A stretch of DNA of 64,000 bases from Ophelia neglecta (GCA_965285935.1 OZ260667.1:33480001-33544000); one strand, 5' to 3'. Shown: positions 13,879 to 23,499, numbered from the stretch's first letter. The notes: generated by a model not told the origin, from the sequence alone. Translations and numbers: made by a program.

Positions 13879-13883
13879 GTTTA
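13879..13883 (+). repeat. Target-site duplication GTTTA (left copy; right copy at 22248-22252)
   Basis: The same 5-mer abuts both TIR ends: ttcg-GTTTA-[TACGG...CCGTA]-GTTTA-tgac. Confidence 0.85.
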
Positions 13884-14500
13884 TACGGTAGCCCATCGTG
13901 CGAAATTTGTAAGGGTAAAGCTCCAACAATTACGCGCGCCTCGTGGACGGCATCATTTTCCTTACACCCCAAGGTGAGTGAATCTGTTTTATCTACCAAT
14001 GTATTGCTTGGCAGTCTTTGTGTAATACATTAAACGAAAGTTAGGAAATTCGTTGTCAATCCTGTGTACTGGTTTGATTTATCGAGATAGCTATTTGTGA
14101 ACAATTCTCGAGCAACATCAAGCGTGGGCGATATTAGGAGAAATAACACCTTAAGTTCCCGTTGCTGTCGGCTTGGTGCACTTTTCGAACCTGAAACTTA
14201 ATTGACAGTAGCTACTGATAACTGTTAACATGTCCATGGTATCTGCTCAGTTTAGAATGATGCGGTTTTTTTATCCTAGCCGTTCAAATAAGTTTTCGAT
14301 GCGCGTGTGTGTAAGGGCACGGCGCGCGTGTAAGAAAGGGCACTAGCCGAGAAAAGGGCACGTAAAAGTAAGGCAACGCACTCTCTGTGATTGTTGCTGT
14401 TCAGTTCCTGGCTTAGAAAGTGGTTCTTTTGCAATCTTTTACGTACAAATGGTCGACCTTTGCCAAGAAGTCACTGATTTTAAGCCATGTTTTCCATAGA
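13884..14500 (+). repeat. Left terminal inverted repeat (~617 bp)
   Basis: Reverse-complement match to 21632-22247. By manual comparison the outer 392 bp (13884-14275) are identical, and the inner ~225 bp carry about 13 substitutions and 1 indel. Confidence 0.95.
13950..13980 (+). promoter_or_regulatory. TIR-embedded initiator-like motif and splice donor (putative non-coding first exon), mirrored at 22151-22181 on the - strand
   Basis: Inr-like TCATTT near 13953 followed by consensus donor AAG|GTGAGT (intron starts 13974; mirror copy 22157). Both internal genes have an acceptor 2-4 nt before the ATG. Confidence 0.55.
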
Positions 14501-14732
14501 CTCAAGTATTCTTTTTATAATGTTTAAATAGCGCAATACTATATTGAATGTTTAGCCTGTTTCATGGTTCTTTTATAAGACTTAGCCTATAATGCCATTT
14601 GCAAAGAGCGATATCTATATATGATCGGCCCATTTTATCTATTTCACAATGTTTTGTGAAATATATTTCACTGTATCTCTCAGCGTTAATTTTAATAAAC
14701 GATTTGTGCATGTTTTTTGGCATTTCAGAATC

Positions 14733-15371
14733 ATGGAATTCCTTGAAACAAGTGTCCACGAGGTGCATGGTGATGATGTATCGTATTCCTGCGATGAATG
14801 TGATTTTAAAACGCCCAAGTTGTCCAATCTGAAGAGACACTGCTGCCGCATGCACGGCGAGAAAGTACATGGTTGTACACAGTGTGACAAAAAGTTCGCT
14901 CTCAAATCAGATGCCATTTATCACAGTGCGGCACATACAAGAAGTTACCTCTGCAGTTCCTGTGGGAAAGGGTATGCTAGCAAACATGGTTTACAAGCCC
15001 ATATGGACACTGTACATTCATCTGCGGGTTTGAGGTGTAAACTATGTGATAAAACATTTGCGTTCCAGTGCCAACTAAAAGACCATATCAATGCTCACCA
15101 TGAAATACTCATGCACTCATGCCAATTTTGTAATAAAAAGTTTGCAACGAGGTCATCTGTGTGTAATCATCGGAAGATTTGCCACAAAAATCCAAAGAAA
15201 GAAATTCATCCTTGTTCCAAATGTGGGAAAAAGTTCAGTTCCAAGGAATATCTACGGAAGCATGACATTGGTAAACACAGCCTCAAACAGTTTCGCTGCC
15301 CATTTGAGGATTGTCAGGAAGTGTTCAACTGGCCACAAGGTCTCAAAAAACATAAAAAAAAACACACATAA
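14733..15371 (+). CDS. Seven-finger C2H2 zinc-finger protein (212 aa), element-encoded
   Basis: Seven Cx2-4C...Hx3-4H units: CDEC, CTQC, CSSC, CKLC, CQFC, CSKC and CPFEDC. The ORF track starts at 14649, but a splice acceptor (ttttttggcatttcag, ending 14728) lies just before the in-frame ATG at 14733 (MEFLETS), which I take as the true start. Confidence 0.9.
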   Translation: MEFLETSVHEVHGDDVSYSCDECDFKTPKLSNLKRHCCRMHGEKVHGCTQCDKKFALKSDAIYHSAAHTRSYLCSSCGKGYASKHGLQAHMDTVHSSAGLRCKLCDKTFAFQCQLKDHINAHHEILMHSCQFCNKKFATRSSVCNHRKICHKNPKKEIHPCSKCGKKFSSKEYLRKHDIGKHSLKQFRCPFEDCQEVFNWPQGLKKHKKKHT

Positions 15372-15820
15372 CATTGGACTGTATTTAAGTGTCATTACTA
15401 GGAACGAGAGTCATATATATTTATAGATAAATTCGTAGACGCATATACATAAAATGTTACCCTAATTGTTATGGCTGCTGTGCACTAAAAAGCGTGCCTG
15501 CAAGGTATCGGAAACCGGAGGCCCTATGATCAAGTTTTAAGTTTACAACGGCAGAATTGTCTATATTTTAAGTTGCGTTTCTCGTTTATTTTGACTTTAA
15601 ACTTTTTAATTCACAACTACATCTGTATTGTATTGTTCGATAGCTACTCTAGTAGAAGTTTAAGCCTTATACTTTTGTCTTATTGGTGATTAATCAAACC
15701 AAGGATGTCTGGTATACAGCATACCACGTCTTCGTGACATATTTTTGATCATTGAGTCAGTTTTTTTTACCTTAATTGAGTTATTTACTGATTGATGTGA
15801 TATGATGAAGGATAATATAC

Positions 15821-15829
15821 TTTATTAAA
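15821..15829. terminator. Candidate bidirectional polyadenylation signal TTTATTAAA
   Basis: Reads AATAAA on the - strand (15821-15826) and ATTAAA on the + strand (15824-15829), midway between the two convergent stop codons. Confidence 0.3.
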
Positions 15830-16287
15830 TGGTGCTTAAAATATTTAGAATCATTAGGTACAAGCTTTTTAAATGTATTATCAAATCACAGACCACTATC
15901 ACTGACCGGTGCAGTGTACTTCCCTTCGTAAAAACGCATATTGTGTTCACATTATAGAAGTTGAATGCACAAATACGAAGAAGACAGGTCATTTCGAGAA
16001 AGCATTTACTAGTACAATTGATTAACAAGACTTATATATAATCGACAGTATTAACATTAAAGTTTGTTCAGGAATCGATAATTCGAGCCATGTGCTTTTT
16101 TATGATGTTTTTTTTTTGACAATGTTCGTTCAGCAAAATAAAGTTTGTTCATAAGTTGTGTTATACAATAAAATGGAAAAATGTTCTACTTCTTCTCATA
16201 TTACATGTTAACAAATATGTATGTGCTATCAAGCCGGCGTATCTTCACAGAGAAAATCATATCCACCGGGTTTTCACTTGGACCCAC

Positions 16288-16444
16288 TCACACTCTTTGG
16301 TGAGACATAAGTTTCGACTCATCGGTCTTATAATACTGCCGGACTCCACGAGCGCCTCTAGACGGGGAGTCCGGCCCATGTATCCTGGAAGACTTTCGCT
16401 TCTGTTGACGCTGCGAGCGCTCCTTCTTGTCAAACATATGATCC
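16288..16444 (-). CDS. Transposase-exonuclease fusion, last coding exon (basic C-terminus)
   Basis: Strong acceptor tttcctttcttttaacag|G. The phase-2 join gives R-DHMFDKKERSQRQQKRK...YYKTDESKLMSHQRV*. The five exons total 4,674 nt, a multiple of 3, giving 1,557 aa. Confidence 0.65.
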
Positions 16445-16551
16445 CTGTTAAAAGAAAGGAAATCTAGTTCACTTGTTGGTAATGTACATTTCTGCATACA
16501 AATAAATTAAAAATTCATTTGAACAAAATGGAATTAAATTGGGATTAGCAC

Positions 16552-16689
16552 CTGACAGCAATTTGATTGATGCACAAGGGGTCAATTCTACCACACGCTT
16601 GCTCTTGGGATTGTGCCGTATCCATTGGACCTGTCAAAGTGTCGTGTTGTGGATAGACTCGCTTTTTTGAGGTCATCAAAGAAAATTTT
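16552..16689 (-). CDS. Transposase-exonuclease fusion, coding exon 4
   Basis: Branch-like CTAAT plus acceptor tttcattgcag|. The phase-2 join gives LDPNR-KFSLMTSKKRVYP. Donor AG|GTGCTA at 16551. Confidence 0.65.
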
Positions 16690-16775
16690 CTGCAATGAAA
16701 TACATTAGTAAATACGTTTTTTGTGTTAGAGCAACAGCACAAGTCAGTTAGTTAATCTCTGTACGAAAATAGTAC

Positions 16776-19593
16776 CTGTTTGGGTCCAAACGCATGTGTA
16801 TGATCTCACAAGCACTGCTGAGTGCTGGTTTAATCTCGTGTGGCTGAAGAACCCCAGAACCAGAGGCATGCAAATCCTGAAAGGTGCTAAAAAAGTGTTC
16901 GCCGTCAAGGCTACCTATAGCACGAGCATTGTACGACTGCTTGTCTAGCAAACCAAATAATTGTATGCGCCTTTCAATCCCAGTTAACAGACCCTCGTAT
17001 AACACCACTGGGATGTCCTTAACGTGACTGGTATTGGGGGGAAAGTGGCTGAAATCAACGTCTCGGAGAAGCCATGCTTTAAGATCCAGCAACCACTCTG
17101 TTCTCTGTGTGACTGAAATTCCGGGACTATCAACAGATGCATATGCATGCCTTATGAGGCGACAAAATTCTGCTTCCTCAAAATCACCATTACGTGACAT
17201 AGCCTCTTCCACTTCTTCAGTGAATAGGGCTGACGCGAATTCAGGAGATTGTTTGTCAACCGTGCAGTCTTCTACAATTGTCCTCTGGAGAATGTGTTTG
17301 GTTTCACTGCTTTCTGCCACCCTAAGCCATGCGGATTTGTATATGTTCGCCTTCTGCATTCCATTCTTGCAAATCTTTGATCTGAATCCAGTAAATTGGT
17401 GATAAAAATCTAAAATGAACAGGCTGTACTCAGCTATGGAGGGTATGTATTCCGGCCTAGAATACCAGTGAATGGGATTGTATTGAGAGTTTATTCCCTC
17501 GATGATGATGCCATCTTTGAAAGGAAGTGAGGCTTTCCAGTCCTGCAAGGTTTTGTGCCAAGTATACTCTGCCCAAACTGCACCAAGTTCGTCCTTCGGT
17601 AGTTTCTGCAACAAACTTTTTAGTACATCACATACTCTATGTTTTCTAATCTTATTTTCTGAGCTTTTCAATCTCGAAGAATCTCCGTATTGCAATGACA
17701 GGAAGTTACATATGCCTTTCTTGTCATTCTTTGATAGCTTGAAGCCATTTGCTCTAATTTCATCCAACACAGGATCAACTATCTTCTGTAGGTCATTCAA
17801 AGTGTACATTTCATTTATGCTTTCAGCTGTGCGTAAGGACATCTCAAACATGTCAAAACTGTCAGCCAGCACAAGTTTCTTCTCCAAGTTACGTTGCCGA
17901 CGACTAGGCTGTCTTGACTTAAAATCACCTGAGAACGAATTCCACATGCTTAAAAGATGTTTTTGTTGAAGATGAAAATGTTGCTCATCACTACCTTCTT
18001 GCTGGTTGGTGTTGTTACCTGTGACATCATCTATATTTTCTTCCACATTTGCCTGTTCAGCGTCTTCACAAATTCCTAGGCTATCGCCGAATGATGAACC
18101 TTCAGGGGCAGTATCCACCCAATTGGCAGTTGATACGGCTGAATATTGATCTTGATCTGTCTGCATCAAATAATCCACTAGATGATCATTTTCCACCAAT
18201 ACATCCCCAAGGTCTGTTTGTAGCTCATTCTCGGTTTCATGGTTGCTTGTCATGGTTGGTTCTAATGCTTTTTTTATACTAGACCCAAGCTTAATACGTT
18301 TCATCAACGACTGTACTGATGGTTCTTGCCAAAATGGAGAGGTGTCTCCATTTGCGGTCGGGATGGCGAGGATGCCGGAAGCCATGATCACTCGTGGTTG
18401 ATCACCAGACACCTCTGTCTTTAGATCAAATTGGTGTTTTGTCGCATGGGCTTGAAATATGTCCACAATGTTCAGAACTAATTTAGTCTTTTGCTGGGAT
18501 TTAACATCTTTGTAGTGATCTTTCTGTAATTGTAATATGGTCAAAGGCTGGTTTTGTGAGTCTCTCAGAGCAAGTTTTGCCCACTGACCATCTGAACAGC
18601 TGACTGGGACATAAATGCCTGCATGGTGCATTTTTTGCAGAATTTCATAGTGCATGGCTCTCATCTTATCCGCTGACAATGAATACCCTTTCAGTGCATA
18701 TCCCACAGGGAGTGCATGTGGTGCCTCAGGATTAAAATATCTATCCAAATCGCTTGCTACCCAAAGCAGAACCTCACTTGGTTTCTCCTTCGTTCGTAGG
18801 TATGCTTCTTTTACTATCATCAGACTATGCTCACAAAGCTGTCGCAACTTTACCAGTTGAAAGGTATCTTTGCGGTCTTGTTTATGACGTGAATGGTGCC
18901 AGATTTGGCCTGAAGATGTTGAATCATGTGCACAGGGAACTGCCTGAAGGGAAGGGACTTCACAAATAAATTTCACGTTTGTTTTCATAAAATGCTGACA
19001 TGCTCTCTTCAGTTCAACAGATGACGATGGGAACTTGGTTGGTCGTCTTGCTGATGGCGAACCATAAATATCAATGCCCAGTTGAATGATTTGCTTGGTC
19101 AATTCCTCATCGAAATGAATTTCCAGCACGGTTGATGACTCTTTGCTCCAGGAGACGTATAGTAGTTTTTTTGTGTCTGTTGCAGCCATTTCAAGCAGAA
19201 CTTGACAAACATACCTCTCCGGCAGCGTGTAATGGACGTCTGTCGTGAATCTTTTCCCAGGATAGGGACATTTTATTTCCACTGAAGTTGCTTCACATGT
19301 TATATCACTTGGTCTTATGTCACCATCTGGGCTCACAATGAGGAATGGAGCTTCATCTACTTCTGCAAGTATTGTACAACCCTTTTCAAAGAACACGCTT
19401 CCTGCTTGGAGCGAAGGTATTATTTTGCATGTCAAGGTCGCAACAGCATCTAACTCATGATGAGTTCCATAGTCAAGTAGCTTCTGAACATCTTCTGTAA
19501 ATGGGGCTTTTGGTTTGCCATGCATCACGCTGTCGAAGTGTTCCTTCATGTCGTTCAATTTCCCTAATCCAAGTGCCGAGTATGCAGTGCTGC
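16776..19593 (-). CDS. Transposase-exonuclease fusion, coding exon 3 (YqaJ core, second Asp, DxxH motif, catalytic Glu)
   Basis: Acceptor tctatttcag|GC gives ITG-STAYSALG in frame. YqaJ motifs: YGTHHE, SPDG, VEIKCPY, YVCQVLLEM. P-transposase-like motifs: LPVGY, VSCSDGQ (D at 18592-18590), ILDFYHQFTGFR (D at 17410-17408), DKQSPEFASALFTEEV, EAEFCRLI, SLDGEHFFSTF (E at 16900-16898). Probable donor AG|GTACTA. Confidence 0.88.
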
Positions 19594-19827
19594 CTGAAAT
19601 AGAAATACATTCACCTTTTCAATTATTTAAGAAAATTGATCACACTCATTTTTGGCTGTTCCTCCTGCTATTGACAATACGAGGGGCAACAGGGGGAACA
19701 GTGATTTGTCACTAACGGTGCCTCCTTGGTAAATATGACATCATATAAAGAAAACGAATGATTGGTCACTTTTATATAAGGGCAACAGTGACTACATACT
19801 GCAAAATCATACACTATGTTTTCTGAC

Positions 19828-20439
19828 CTGTAATTTTTGCTTTCTTTCGCAACTGGAACCAAGGTTGAGATCGTTGTTTTATGAGTTCAGGATCTGTCTG
19901 TGATTCGTCATTGGCAAGGCACACATAATTACCTTGGTGCAGCATACTGATAAAGCCCTTTCCTTCTTGGTAATTCTCATCATTTTGCATAATTGCTGCA
20001 GCATGCAAACACGTATCAATAGTGTCCATTGCTTGCTGCACACATGCATCTATTTGCGCAAGAGCTGTTCTCAAGGCGCTGATGATGTAACTGTATTTGG
20101 GGTTGTCTTTTTTACATTTCTCAGCTTCTGCCTTGTTCATGGACTCCCATTTGTCTAAGCACAAATTTTTTTTCACCTTAACCTCTCTCAGTTCCTTAAC
20201 TCGGACGCTTAATATATGGACAATTTGACGGCAGTCTTCAATCAATTTCTTGTTGTTGACTTCCTTAATGTCAATTCTTCCCATCTTGATTTCATAATCG
20301 CACTGTTCCATAACACATGATATCGATTTCGCTTCGATGTCTAGTCTTTCTTCTTTTTCTTGGAGAGTGGGCGGTCCTTCGTGGCCAAATAAATTTACCA
20401 CTGCATCTTTTCCTTTGGTGCAGGTATTTATTTTTTTAC
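19828..20439 (-). CDS. Transposase-exonuclease fusion, coding exon 2 (coiled-coil-like region and start of YqaJ domain)
   Basis: Acceptor acattttag|GT joins in frame to give LCFDG-KKINTCTKGKDAVVNLFGHE. It ends QRSQPWFQLRKKAKITG at donor G|GTCAGA (phase 1). Confidence 0.85.
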
Positions 20440-20537
20440 CTAAAATGTAATTGAATTATTATAAAATTAGATACTGATTGTTTAATAATACAATCATTAG
20501 GATGTCTACTATATTATATTATTTGTCGGGTACATAC

Positions 20538-21486
20538 CATCAAAGCAAAGTTTGTGAGGTTTGGTCTTGTCCAGTAATCGAGACATAGGCTCCATAAAAC
20601 CAGCTTCCATGTCTGCCATAAATGGTTCTTGTTCCAATACACCCTTGATGGGTACAGCAAAGTTTATTCGACTCTTTGAAGGGTCGAGGTGGTCTTCCGG
20701 TGAAGTGCCCTGACCAGTGTTTTTTTGACCACTCATAAAGAACAGGAATTTTCGTTTAAAAAGCTTGAAGCCTGCCCTCCAGAATGCCTTAACCTGTTCA
20801 TCGTATCTCATTTGTGAAGTTTTGTTCACACTAAAATAGTCAACAACATCCAAGAAAAGAAGGTAACTTATATTGTTCATCGGCAGCTTTCCTGAGGAAA
20901 CAAGGTAGAATAGTTTATTCCATCGCATCAATTGCCCATGCTCTTTAAGTTTGTGTAGAACGTCGGGTAATAAACTCTGCATGCGATTTTCAACTGATTC
21001 AAATTCTTCCATGTCGTCCACTTCAGGATAATATTCAGTGTTATCAATAGGTGAACTATGCCCTTTTAGCTCATCTTCATTTGTAATATTCAAAACCGAA
21101 AAGCTTGCTTCAAGACAATCTTTCTCTGCGCTGCTGAACAAAGCCCTCTTAGCACTTACTGATGAATTGTCACATTTGCCTTTTTTCTGTGCAGGGCTTT
21201 TAGATGGTGTTTGAACTGCCCTGAGCTGAATCTCGTCAGTAGAAATCACAATTTCATTGCCGCTTTGATGTTGGTGCAGAGGCACAATATTCGAACCGTT
21301 TACAGTTATAATTTTTGAAATCATGACACTCTGCCCCGTTTTAGGGTGAATCCCAAACTCGCGGATTTTCATGGGTTTTGTGCCATGACTCTCAATGAGA
21401 TGTGAAGCTAGATCTTTGAAGGTTGTTGGCCCATGTGGACAATAGCCACAATAGTAAGCCCTGTTCATGTCTGGCAAAGGGTCCAT
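20538..21486 (-). CDS. Transposase-exonuclease fusion, coding exon 1 (N-terminal C2H2-like finger to first catalytic Asp)
   Basis: ATG at 21486 follows acceptor ttcttatag|GT. It encodes YYCGYCPHGPTTFKDLASHLIESH and ends KLCFDG (Asp codon 20541-20539) at donor G|GTATGT (intron starts 20537, phase 1). Confidence 0.85.
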
Positions 21487-21631
21487 ACCTATAAGAATAT
21501 AAGTTTATTGTCAGAGTATTAGCAATATCTATAGGTAAATATATATATATATATATATATATAAAACGTAGTTTTTAAACTGAAATACAAGCAGTCATAC
21601 ATTTATCAATGAAAATGAGTTTTATTGTGAT

Positions 21632-22247
21632 TCTATGGAAACATGGCCTTAAATCAGTGACTTCTAGGCAAAGGTCGAACATTTGTACGTAAAAGATCGC
21701 AAAAGAACCACTTTCTAAGCCAGGAACTGAACAGCAACAATCACAGAAAGTGCGTTGCCTTACTTTTACGTTCCCTTTACTCGGCTAGTGCCCTTTATTA
21801 CACGCGCCCCGTGCCCTTACATACACGCGCATCGAAAACTTATTTGAACGGCCAAGATAAAAAAACCGCATCATTCTAAACTGAGCAGATACCATGGACA
21901 TGTTAACAGTTATCAGTAGCTACTGTCAATTAAGTTTCAGGTTCGAAAAGTGCACCAAGCCGACAGCAACGGGAACTTAAGGTGTTATTTCTCCTAATAT
22001 CGCCCACGCTTGATGTTGCTCGAGAATTGTTCACAAATAGCTATCTCGATAAATCAAACCAGTACACAGGATTGACAACGAATTTCCTAACTTTCGTTTA
22101 ATGTATTACACAAAGACTGCCAAGCAATACATTGGTAGATAAAACAGATTCACTCACCTTGGGGTGTAAGGAAAATGATGCCGTCCACGAGGCGCGCGTA
22201 ATTGTTGGAGCTTTACCCTTACAAATTTCGCACGATGGGCTACCGTA
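21632..22247 (-). repeat. Right terminal inverted repeat (~616 bp)
   Basis: Reverse complement of 13884-14500. Similarity ends at TCTATGG (21632). Confidence 0.95.
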
Positions 22248-23499
22248 GTTTATGACAAGCCCATTCTTCTTTTAATAAACAAGTATAAAAAAAACCATCT
22301 GCAAAATTCAAATACATGTACAATTATCAATCAAGCAGAGAGTATGAGCATGTGGTGAGTTTTCAACACTCGCATAATGATTGACGTACCGGATTTTGTA
22401 CATGTATTGAACAGATCGCAGTATACATAGGGCGTGATCTTTAACTCGTTGTTTGTAACGGGCGATGCTTCAAATTGGCTCAGGGCTAGGAGTAGTGCAT
22501 GTGAGGAAGCAATCTTATACATTTTTAATGTAGCCATTTGGTCTCGGAACAAGACAGTGTTTTATAGACAACTAAAATGTAAGAACGTTAATCGAGTTAT
22601 AATTAGATGTTGTGAAATCTTGTTTTGTGTTATCTAATCTCGAGCCTGGACTTACCTATTAAAGTGCAATTTTGAAGCGTCTTCTTTCGGCTAATACAAG
22701 CTCACCTTTCAAGGACGAATTATTTGCCCAGAAGCTGTGTCATGGTGGCATATTTGCATGCATGGAAAGGATTGGGTAAAGCTTGGCGTGACATCTCCCA
22801 TCGTGTCTATTTTAAAGATAAGTTGGTCGCTTTAATCACGAAAAGGAAATAGGCTATCCTTGCACGCAGAGTCGTGCTTTCGTTGAAAATACCTGATGAA
22901 CCAAGAGCCTCGATGAGGAGAGGGCATGGCGGGCCGTCTGGCAGAGAATCAACAGCGTCACATTGACCTGCCAAATTAGACACAGTATAAGATGGATGAG
23001 GACACGAGGAGGTTTGTTACCATGCAGACAGTAGATGTGACTGGTTGCTTGACACTTAGTTGGCAGTGAGAAAAACGCTCTTTGGGGCTGCTTCAAGGAG
23101 CAGCCTGCAAAAATAACATCGTAAACGAGCCAGGCATGGTAACCACCTGGAAACGGCAATAAAAAAAGCAAGAGGGAATAACAGCCCGGCTATACTGGTG
23201 GCTGTGGATGAGGGTATTGTATTGGTGTGTACACAAAACGACTGGAAGTGTTTGTGAGTGCTGTGCGTGTCGTAATATAAGGCAGAAGAACGCCACAGAT
23301 AACGGACATGACGACTAAACGTATGCATGCCAGATGCTGGCGGCTGCCTCGTGACTGATCTGTGTCGGTGTACTGTGTGGGTCTGGTCGGGGCTGCTGAA
23401 CCCCGGCCCACCGGGCCAATCTGGCCCTAGCAGACCCGACCCCAGTCTGTCGCCCATGACACCACACACCATCATCACCTGCACGGCTATCGATTTCTC

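Follow-up and report, generated by a model that had tools for sequence, protein, structure and literature searches.

Can the catalytic fold of a P-element-type transposase hold a complete second nuclease? The question is raised by a locus in a 64,000-nucleotide stretch of the Ophelia neglecta genome (GCA_965285935.1 OZ260667.1:33480001-33544000), which we refer to as the window, with positions counted from its first letter. An earlier note on this sequence had proposed that the minus strand between positions 16288 and 21486 encodes a DDE transposase related to P elements and THAP9, with a lambda-exonuclease (YqaJ) domain inserted between the first two catalytic aspartates (D1 and D2) of its RNase H fold. 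The analysis reported here leads us to consider it highly probable that the window contains a recently active cut-and-paste transposon, whose P-type transposase of about 1,557 amino acids (aa) carries a nested exonuclease that would act on the cleaved ends.

Three long open reading frames (ORFs) lie on the minus strand of 16288-21486, at 20509-21486 (325 aa), 19814-20401 (195 aa) and 16748-19558 (936 aa). We examined the gene model exon by exon and employed intronless paralog ORFs in place of the joined protein for the full-length tests. The transposase gene extends from 21486 to 16288 in five exons, the borders being those of the earlier note (Table 1). All four introns (98, 234, 86 and 107 nt) begin with GT and end with AG, each of the five exons is open in its own frame, and the intron phases are compatible. 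With the split codons included, the exons add up to 316 + 1 + 203 + 1 + 938 + 1 + 45 + 1 + 51 = 1,557 codons, and the frame ends with a TGA at 16288. The proposal that the three ORFs and two small exons join into one frame of about 1,557 aa was therefore reproduced on recomputation, and the codons of D1, D2 and the catalytic glutamate (E) start exactly where they had been placed, at 20541, 18592 and 16900. Exon 1 has D1 as its final codon. The YqaJ motif Q..W..R..TGS spans the junction of exons 2 and 3, being split between the TG and the S, and is followed by G..E, SPDG, EIKCP and Q.

The same arrangement is found without introns elsewhere in the genome. The ORF L018:3550-7734 (minus strand) encodes an intronless paralog of 1,394 aa that is collinear with exons 1, 2 and 3, including the same ..DG at the end of the part corresponding to exon 1. 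A second intronless paralog, L017:2991-6419 (plus strand), encodes 1,142 aa with the parts in the same order. Both are divergent paralogs (30-39% identity). Exon 1 is collinear with paralog residues 74-250 (ending in ..DG) and exon 2 with residues 264-444, while exons 4 and 5 match the C terminus of the Owenia fusiformis protein P0003. Taken together, the intronless paralogs and the C terminus of P0003 strongly support, by comparison of sequences, a single gene of five exons.

Pfam, profile and fold comparisons agree on the identity of the inserted domain, and all of the YqaJ motifs that had been reported between D1 and D2 are present in the window. The Pfam model YqaJ (PF09588) matches the window ORF with an E value of 4e-6 and also matches 21 of the 36 family members scanned. 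When the family profile was compared with the sequences in the PDB, it detected lambda exonuclease (1avq, E 7e-4), with the motifs W..R, SPDG and E.KCP aligned. We take these motifs to be the equivalents of lambda exonuclease W24 and R28, which form the 5'-phosphate pocket, and of D119, E129 and K131; the W and R of the exon 2 motif align with W24 and R28. In fold comparisons, residues ~250-465 of the model of the 1,142-aa paralog match the lambda exonuclease and LHK-Exo folds at Z 14.3-14.7, and residues 1..182 of the model of window exon 3 match residues 35..214 of the lambda exonuclease chain at Z 13.2. The first helices absent from the exon 3 match are encoded by exon 2. Matches to lambda exonuclease, YqaJ and LHK-Exo ranged overall from Z 13 to 15. 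Moreover, the catalytic D...E.K set and the W..R pocket residues are at least 90% conserved in the family. These results show that a complete PD-(D/E)XK domain of the lambda-exonuclease/YqaJ type, carried on a helical stalk, forms an insert of ~450 aa between the first hairpin, which holds D1, and beta3. In a feature search of the ESM Atlas, the sole return was an unnamed YqaJ cluster with no taxa attached.

On the three window ORFs, Pfam reported YqaJ alone, and no P-element model matched the window protein at E<=1. The Pfam check suggested in the earlier note thus recognized YqaJ and none of the P-element models on the window protein itself; within the family, PF21787 (TNP-like_RNaseH_N) matches 14 of the 36 members, always at the D2 region and with a best E value of 1.4e-5. 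The other sub-threshold Pfam families in these 36 members were singletons, in contrast to the recurrent PF21787. Searches of the PDB sequences by phmmer and by profile hmmsearch found lambda exonuclease and did not find P transposase. The relationship to P was detected by the per-member Pfam scans, by hhalign and by fold comparison.

For the hhalign comparison, we employed a canonical P/THAP9-like profile of 24 sequences, seeded by an 833-aa ORF of the same genome (L026:364-2865, plus strand; PF21787, PF21788 and PF21789). A first alignment of the family profile with a single P-like sequence was weak (probability 6%), and the result was better with the 24-sequence profile. The half of the protein from the DxxH motif to the catalytic E aligned with the P-like segment ..SDvPHL.KT.RN ... 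QDpLEq.F.. over 210 columns (probability 79%, E 1.6e-5), with the whole region of the family between DxxH and E aligned to the P-like GTP-binding domain (GBD). Without the insert columns, the N-terminal and middle blocks aligned with an E value of 3.8e-6, and all three blocks together with an E value of 2.3e-9 (probability 96%). In this alignment, D1, D2 and E of the family pair with the invariant P-like residues D414, D516 and E768, and D1 falls on the D of the canonical DE.KI motif. The upstream helix-turn-helix region is likewise collinear with P-like transposases (E 3e-4). Every motif pairing with P/THAP9 transposases that had been suggested from the sequence was recovered in these alignments. 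No THAP domain was detected by Pfam in window exon 1 or in the 36 family members; the window protein begins with a C2H2-like motif.

Structure prediction placed the two components in one architecture. The AlphaFold2 model of the 1,142-aa paralog, computed with the family alignment, had a predicted local distance difference test score (pLDDT) of 85.3 and a predicted template modeling score of 0.75. The best matches of this model among PDB structures, as searched with Foldseek, were lambda exonuclease and Drosophila P transposase. With VIA-align, it superposed on Drosophila P transposase (6p5a_A) at Z 27.3, with a root-mean-square deviation of 3.0 A over 312 residues. The superposition is that of one rigid body, in which model residues 35..1139 correspond to chain residues 196..566 and which spans the insert; consequently, the segments on either side of the insert come together as a single P-like domain, insertion domain included. 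Other transposases scored Z 12.0 (Transib, HzTransib), ~10 (RAG1) and 8.4 (Hermes) against the same model. The AlphaFold model of window exon 3 (pLDDT 80.1) also matched 6p5a_A, at Z 22.3, with residues 265..938 corresponding to chain residues 246..569. The superposition suggested in the earlier note thus matched the predicted folds to both Drosophila P transposase (Z 27.3 and 22.3) and lambda exonuclease (Z 13-14). The nesting of the exonuclease in a P-type RNase H fold was upheld as well, since a single rigid P match spans the insert and the profile aligns once the insert is removed. Given the rigid superposition and the profile equivalence to the P-like residues, D1, D2 and E (D316, D855 and E1419 in the numbering of the spliced protein) are predicted to converge on one active site. 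The layout of the paralog in Table 1 was drawn from the order of secondary structure elements in the model and from the hhalign pairs, in L017 numbering.

A second large insert, not singled out in the earlier note, separates D2 from the strand preceding DxxH. In window exon 3 it covers residues ~386-537 (about 17980-18435) and is acidic and predicted to be disordered. It cannot be aligned between lineages, and conserved helices come after it.

The 1,142-aa paralog was searched with phmmer against 1.84 billion cluster representatives, which yielded a family of 1,755 proteins at E<=0.001, including 331 at E<=1e-30. Many members are 1,200-1,700 aa long and match from end to end. Named members come from Mytilus edulis, Dreissena polymorpha, Batillaria attramentaria and Owenia fusiformis, and they are labeled only "YqaJ viral recombinase domain-containing protein" or "unnamed". 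Judged by these matches, the family is widespread in molluscs and annelids. For two distant homologs, the encoding contigs are short and have no recognizable terminal inverted repeats (TIRs). We aligned 50 sequences (23% mean column identity) and recorded, in L017 numbering, the residues that were at least 90% conserved. These comprise D69 and K71 in the D1 motif; Q265, W270, R274, G281, S282, G322, E326, D373, G374, E388, K390, C391 and Q413 in the YqaJ domain; D618, G619 and Q620 at D2; D944, H947 and R953 at DxxH; and the catalytic E1114. The window copy retains every one of these residues, so the earlier statement that both catalytic sets are intact stands.

The paralogs, the family and the models bear on the possibility that the architecture is an artefact, in which a separate YqaJ element or gene was inserted in a P-like gene and chance choices of splice sites produced a single frame. 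Such an origin would fit with junctions that have no RNA support and with database gene models of homologs that are often fragments. However, each of two divergent paralogs encodes the complete set of parts in a single ORF without interruption, and dozens of homologs of 1,200-1,700 aa from other species match over their full length in one stretch. In addition, the family conserves the site of the insert along with the catalytic residues of both nucleases, and AlphaFold gives one P-like domain plus an inserted domain (pLDDT 85). We therefore regard an artefact as highly improbable.

The transposase gene is enclosed by a transposon of 8,364 bp (13884-22247) that ends in long TIRs flanked by a 5-bp target-site duplication (TSD). 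The genome contains three other copies of this element, ~99.5% identical, so that four copies are located on four chromosomes; the other three have 5-bp TSDs of their own sequence (TTAAC, TATAT and ATTTA). In all four copies, the five exons are free of stops and indels. The paralog lineages likewise have 5-bp TSDs. The L018 element and its two sister copies have the 5-bp TSDs TGAGT, TAGAT and ATGTT and TIRs that begin with CACGCTGGG, and the L017 element has the 5-bp TSD CAGAA and TIRs that begin with CACAGTGTAG. A 5-bp TSD is thus seen in eight insertions from three lineages, with termini TAC.., CAC.. and CAC... The stretch 13884-22247 is, in our reading, an autonomous and recently active cut-and-paste DNA transposon, young and apparently still mobile. 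Alternatively, the gene could be a domesticated, transposase-derived host gene that is no longer mobile, as its long intact reading frame and the conservation of the protein across phyla might suggest. This is improbable in the extreme when set against the intact long TIRs and TSDs, the four near-identical copies at unrelated sites with their own TSDs, and the several divergent lineages with TIRs and TSDs in the same genome.

Table 1. Coordinates of the element and its transposase gene in the window, and predicted layout of the 1,142-aa paralog (L017)
Feature	Position	Strand	Content or evidence
Left TSD	13879..13883		GTTTA, 5 bp; same 5 bases at right end
Left TIR	13884..14492	+	609 nt, terminus TACGGTAGCCC; 98% complementary pair by repeat search; copy boundaries coincide in all copies
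C2H2 gene	14649..15371	+	240-aa stand-alone multi-C2H2 zinc-finger ORF, convergent with transposase gene; Pfam zf-C2H2 E 3.5e-19
Exon 5	16288..16444	-	C-terminal tail to TGA; conserved PSRG..VRQY..DESK motif; open frame; homologous to Owenia P0003 C terminus
Exon 4	16552..16689	-	Short C-terminal exon (..KKRVYPQH..); GT-AG borders, open frame; matches Owenia P0003 (..KRPVYPQH..)
Exon 3, C-terminal part	16776..19593	-	GBD-like helical domain; catalytic E (16900-16898)
Exon 3, core part	16776..19593	-	RNase H beta3-beta4 with D2 (18592-18590), followed by the disordered insert of variable sequence and by beta5 with DxxH (D 17410, H 17401)
Exon 3, YqaJ part	16776..19593	-	Most of YqaJ/lambda-exonuclease domain (D 19327, E 19279, K 19273), then stalk return helix
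Exon 2	19828..20439	-	RNase H beta2 region (..VNLFGHE..), long coiled-coil stalk helices, YqaJ N-terminal motif (KQRSQPW..LR..ITG)
Exon 1	20538..21486	-	ATG, C2H2-like motif, helix-turn-helix-like region, RNase H beta1 ending in D1 (20541-20539)
Right TIR	21639..22247	-	609 nt; repeat search and copy boundaries
Right TSD	22248..22252		GTTTA, 5 bp
Beta1 with D1	63-72 (L017 numbering)		Then short beta2
Three long stalk helices	95-217 (L017 numbering)		
YqaJ domain	~231-500 (L017 numbering)		
Return helix	529-550 (L017 numbering)		
Beta3	556-564 and 577-585 (L017 numbering)		
Alpha1	591-607 (L017 numbering)		
Beta4, then D2	611-617 (L017 numbering)		
Second insert, partly disordered	~300 aa after D2 (L017 paralog)		
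Beta5, then DxxH	937-943 (L017 numbering)		GBD-like helices follow
Helix carrying catalytic E1114	around 1114 (L017 numbering)		

The second gene of the element, a C2H2 zinc-finger ORF, is identical or nearly so in the other copies of the window element. The L018 element carries a convergent C2H2 ORF in the same position (L018:1360-2109, plus strand; zf-C2H2 E 1.9e-28), and the position of this ORF is therefore conserved in two lineages with only ~35% transposase identity. The C2H2 protein may be an accessory protein that binds the TIRs. A (TA)n tract is located at 21526-21563, in the interval that separates the right TIR at its inner end from the start codon of the transposase. Within exon 1, at 20921-20959, the DNA contigs of three runs from one sample skip 37 nt, indicating that at least one copy in that individual has a frameshifting deletion.

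The termini of the three divergent lineages share the sequence YACRSTR, in the forms TACGGTA, CACAGTG and CACGCTG (window 13884-13891 and 22240-22247; L017:1403-1412; L018:590-598). CACAGTG combined with a 5-bp TSD is the pattern of the Transib/RAG signal heptamer, yet the protein is P-type (Z 27 versus 12). A Transib/RAG-like assignment, considered for the 5-bp TSD and the CAC termini, was rejected on the basis of the fold scores (Z 12.0 and ~10, compared to 27.3 for P) and of the Pfam scans, which gave no Transib/RAG match. Related copies are found at G000:C7:110057335-110207784 and at C1:146281931-146284469; at least five, with 694-aa open frames, are grouped in ~150 kb of one chromosome. 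Many more degraded relatives are found elsewhere in the genome. The cluster and the degraded relatives indicate that several lineages of the nested-exonuclease family coexist in this genome.

How would the two nucleases cooperate? According to our model, the DDE site would nick the transposon ends and carry out strand transfer, which probably generates the 5-bp target duplications. DDE enzymes produce 3'-OH and 5'-phosphate ends when they hydrolyze DNA. Next, acting on these cleaved ends in the transpososome, the exonuclease domain would resect or remove the non-transferred 5' strand, so that the transposon would be left with single-stranded 3' ends. In canonical P transposase, such ends result from a 17-nt staggered cut. 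In functional terms, the nested domain would be comparable to a built-in second-strand nuclease of the TnsA type. We infer this role in transposition from what the family retains: action on the cleaved ends appears most likely because the catalytic triad and the 5'-phosphate-pocket residues are kept and because members from different phyla have the domain at the same place in the catalytic fold.

The main alternative is that the exonuclease works outside the transposition chemistry. It would resect the gap at the donor site, or host DNA ends, for homologous recombination from the sister chromatid; the element would thereby be restored and transposition would be effectively replicative. The domain has the lambda-exonuclease fold with its catalytic residues, and the classical role of that family is 5'-3' resection for recombination. 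A long helical stalk also sets it apart from the RNase H core, and in ISL2EU elements a nuclease of this kind is a protein in its own right (PMC4482050). However, even deeply diverged members strictly conserve the point of the catalytic fold at which the domain is inserted, which favors a tight link to the active site of the transposase, and for a diffusible repair helper a separate ORF, like that of ISL2EU, would do equally well. We consider this alternative unlikely, if still worth weighing, and prefer the action of the nested exonuclease on the cleaved transposon ends.

Several points weigh against the preferred reading as a whole. The splice junctions have no transcript support: no RNA run contains the sequence, and the three runs that do contain it are DNA, with contigs that continue uninterrupted across the introns. 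PF21788 (GBD) and PF21789 (RNaseH_C) match no family member at E<=1, and the half from DxxH to E is assigned by hhalign and fold. The geometry of the D-D-E residues and the distance between the two active sites are inferred. Furthermore, the exonuclease could have a regulatory role or take the donor gap as its substrate. Lambda exonuclease itself works as a trimeric ring, and a domain tethered to a stalk may behave as either an exonuclease or an endonuclease.

Families of DDE transposons differ chiefly, among other features, in how they cleave the second strand, for which they employ hairpins, a second nuclease or repeated hydrolysis. A P-type enzyme with its own conserved 5'-3' exonuclease would, if confirmed, be a new eukaryotic solution to second-strand processing, and the young intact copies make the role of the exonuclease testable. 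The architecture shows that the RNase H fold tolerates a domain of ~450 aa between beta2 and beta3. Recognizing proteins labeled "YqaJ viral recombinase" or "unnamed" as transposases corrects the annotation of mollusc and annelid genomes. In addition, an active element with large cargo and a defined 5-bp stagger could interest developers of transposon tools.

Among known nucleases, lambda exonuclease, YqaJ and LHK-Exo align with the window family at D, E, K and W..R, the difference being that the domain of the family is inserted in another enzyme on a stalk; the formation of a trimeric ring by the nested domain seems unlikely. The resemblance to TnsA and TnsB of Tn7 is a functional analogy only. 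In Tn7, a nuclease with a restriction-endonuclease fold handles the 5' strand and a DDE enzyme the 3' ends, which results in cut-and-paste transposition; these are two separate bacterial proteins, not homologous to the P-type core.

With P and THAP9 transposases (6p5a and 6pe2), the family shares the RNase H fold and its D, D and E, a DxxH following beta5, the upstream helix-turn-helix, the order of motifs and, probably, a helical insertion domain at the position of the GTP-binding domain of P. It differs in the stalk and lambda-exonuclease insert of ~450 aa between beta2 and beta3 and in a second, variable insert between D2 and beta5. D1 and D2 are separated by 539 aa, compared to 102 aa in a canonical P-like ORF from this genome. 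Target duplications of 5 bp stand in place of the 7-8 bp usual for the P superfamily; no THAP domain was detected by Pfam, PF21788 has no match, and a second gene for a C2H2 zinc-finger protein is present. The genome offers an internal contrast, a canonical P/THAP9-like element of ~7 kb in two copies that are 98-99% identical (L031:1532-8558 and L032:1416-8349), with TIRs that begin with CTGGGA and the 7-bp TSDs ATAGTAC and TTTAGAC.

The earlier note had rightly pointed to lambda-exonuclease-like domains in an accessory ORF of ISL2EU and in some Kolobok lineages. KolobokE is reported to combine a PD-(D/E)XK lambda-exonuclease-like nuclease with a DDE transposase, the nuclease being downstream of the transposase domain (PMC9587614, Kojima and Bao 2022). 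Kolobok elements have a 4-bp TTAA TSD, 5'-RR...YY-3' termini and a C/DxxH signature common to P; nearly all have a zinc finger after C/DxxH, to which KolobokE adds a second, CCHC finger after D1, and they are present in molluscs and annelids (PMC9587614). The window family resembles KolobokE as a eukaryotic DDE transposon of marine invertebrates with a lambda-exonuclease-like nuclease and the C/DxxH signature, and one could assign it to that lineage. Against this, the nuclease of the window family is nested in the RNase H fold, flanked by D1 and D2, instead of downstream of the transposase. Neither the 4-bp TTAA TSD nor RR/YY termini were found in the eight insertions of the three lineages, which have 5-bp non-TTAA TSDs and TAC or CAC termini. 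Zinc fingers of the Kolobok type were not found in the 50-sequence alignment, in which the only conserved Cys/His columns, H299, C391 and H947, make no finger. The core matches the P-specific PF21787 and the P transposase structure including the insertion domain, Kolobok being judged here by its description. Membership in KolobokE is accordingly very improbable.

ISL2EU, of the PHIS superfamily, encodes a YqaJ protein as a separate ORF beside a DDE transposase of the Harbinger/IS5 type and has a 2-bp TSD (PMC4482050). It resembles the window family in pairing a YqaJ exonuclease-domain protein with a DDE transposase, whereas the family has a P-type core, a nuclease that is fused and nested, and a 5-bp TSD. 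Full-text literature searches for YqaJ with Kolobok, YqaJ with THAP9, and P transposase with lambda exonuclease, made outside Repbase and Dfam, returned no description of a P-type core with a nested lambda exonuclease, consistent with the suggestion that the arrangement is possibly undescribed. We tentatively raise the possibility, without yet favoring it, that the family is an undescribed superfamily-level branch related to P and widespread in lophotrochozoans, in which the nested exonuclease took over the non-transferred strand to give a single-chain, two-nuclease transposase with a 5-bp stagger. By their descriptions, KolobokE and ISL2EU are set apart from the lineage presented here, which is related to P and carries its second nuclease nested inside the transposase.

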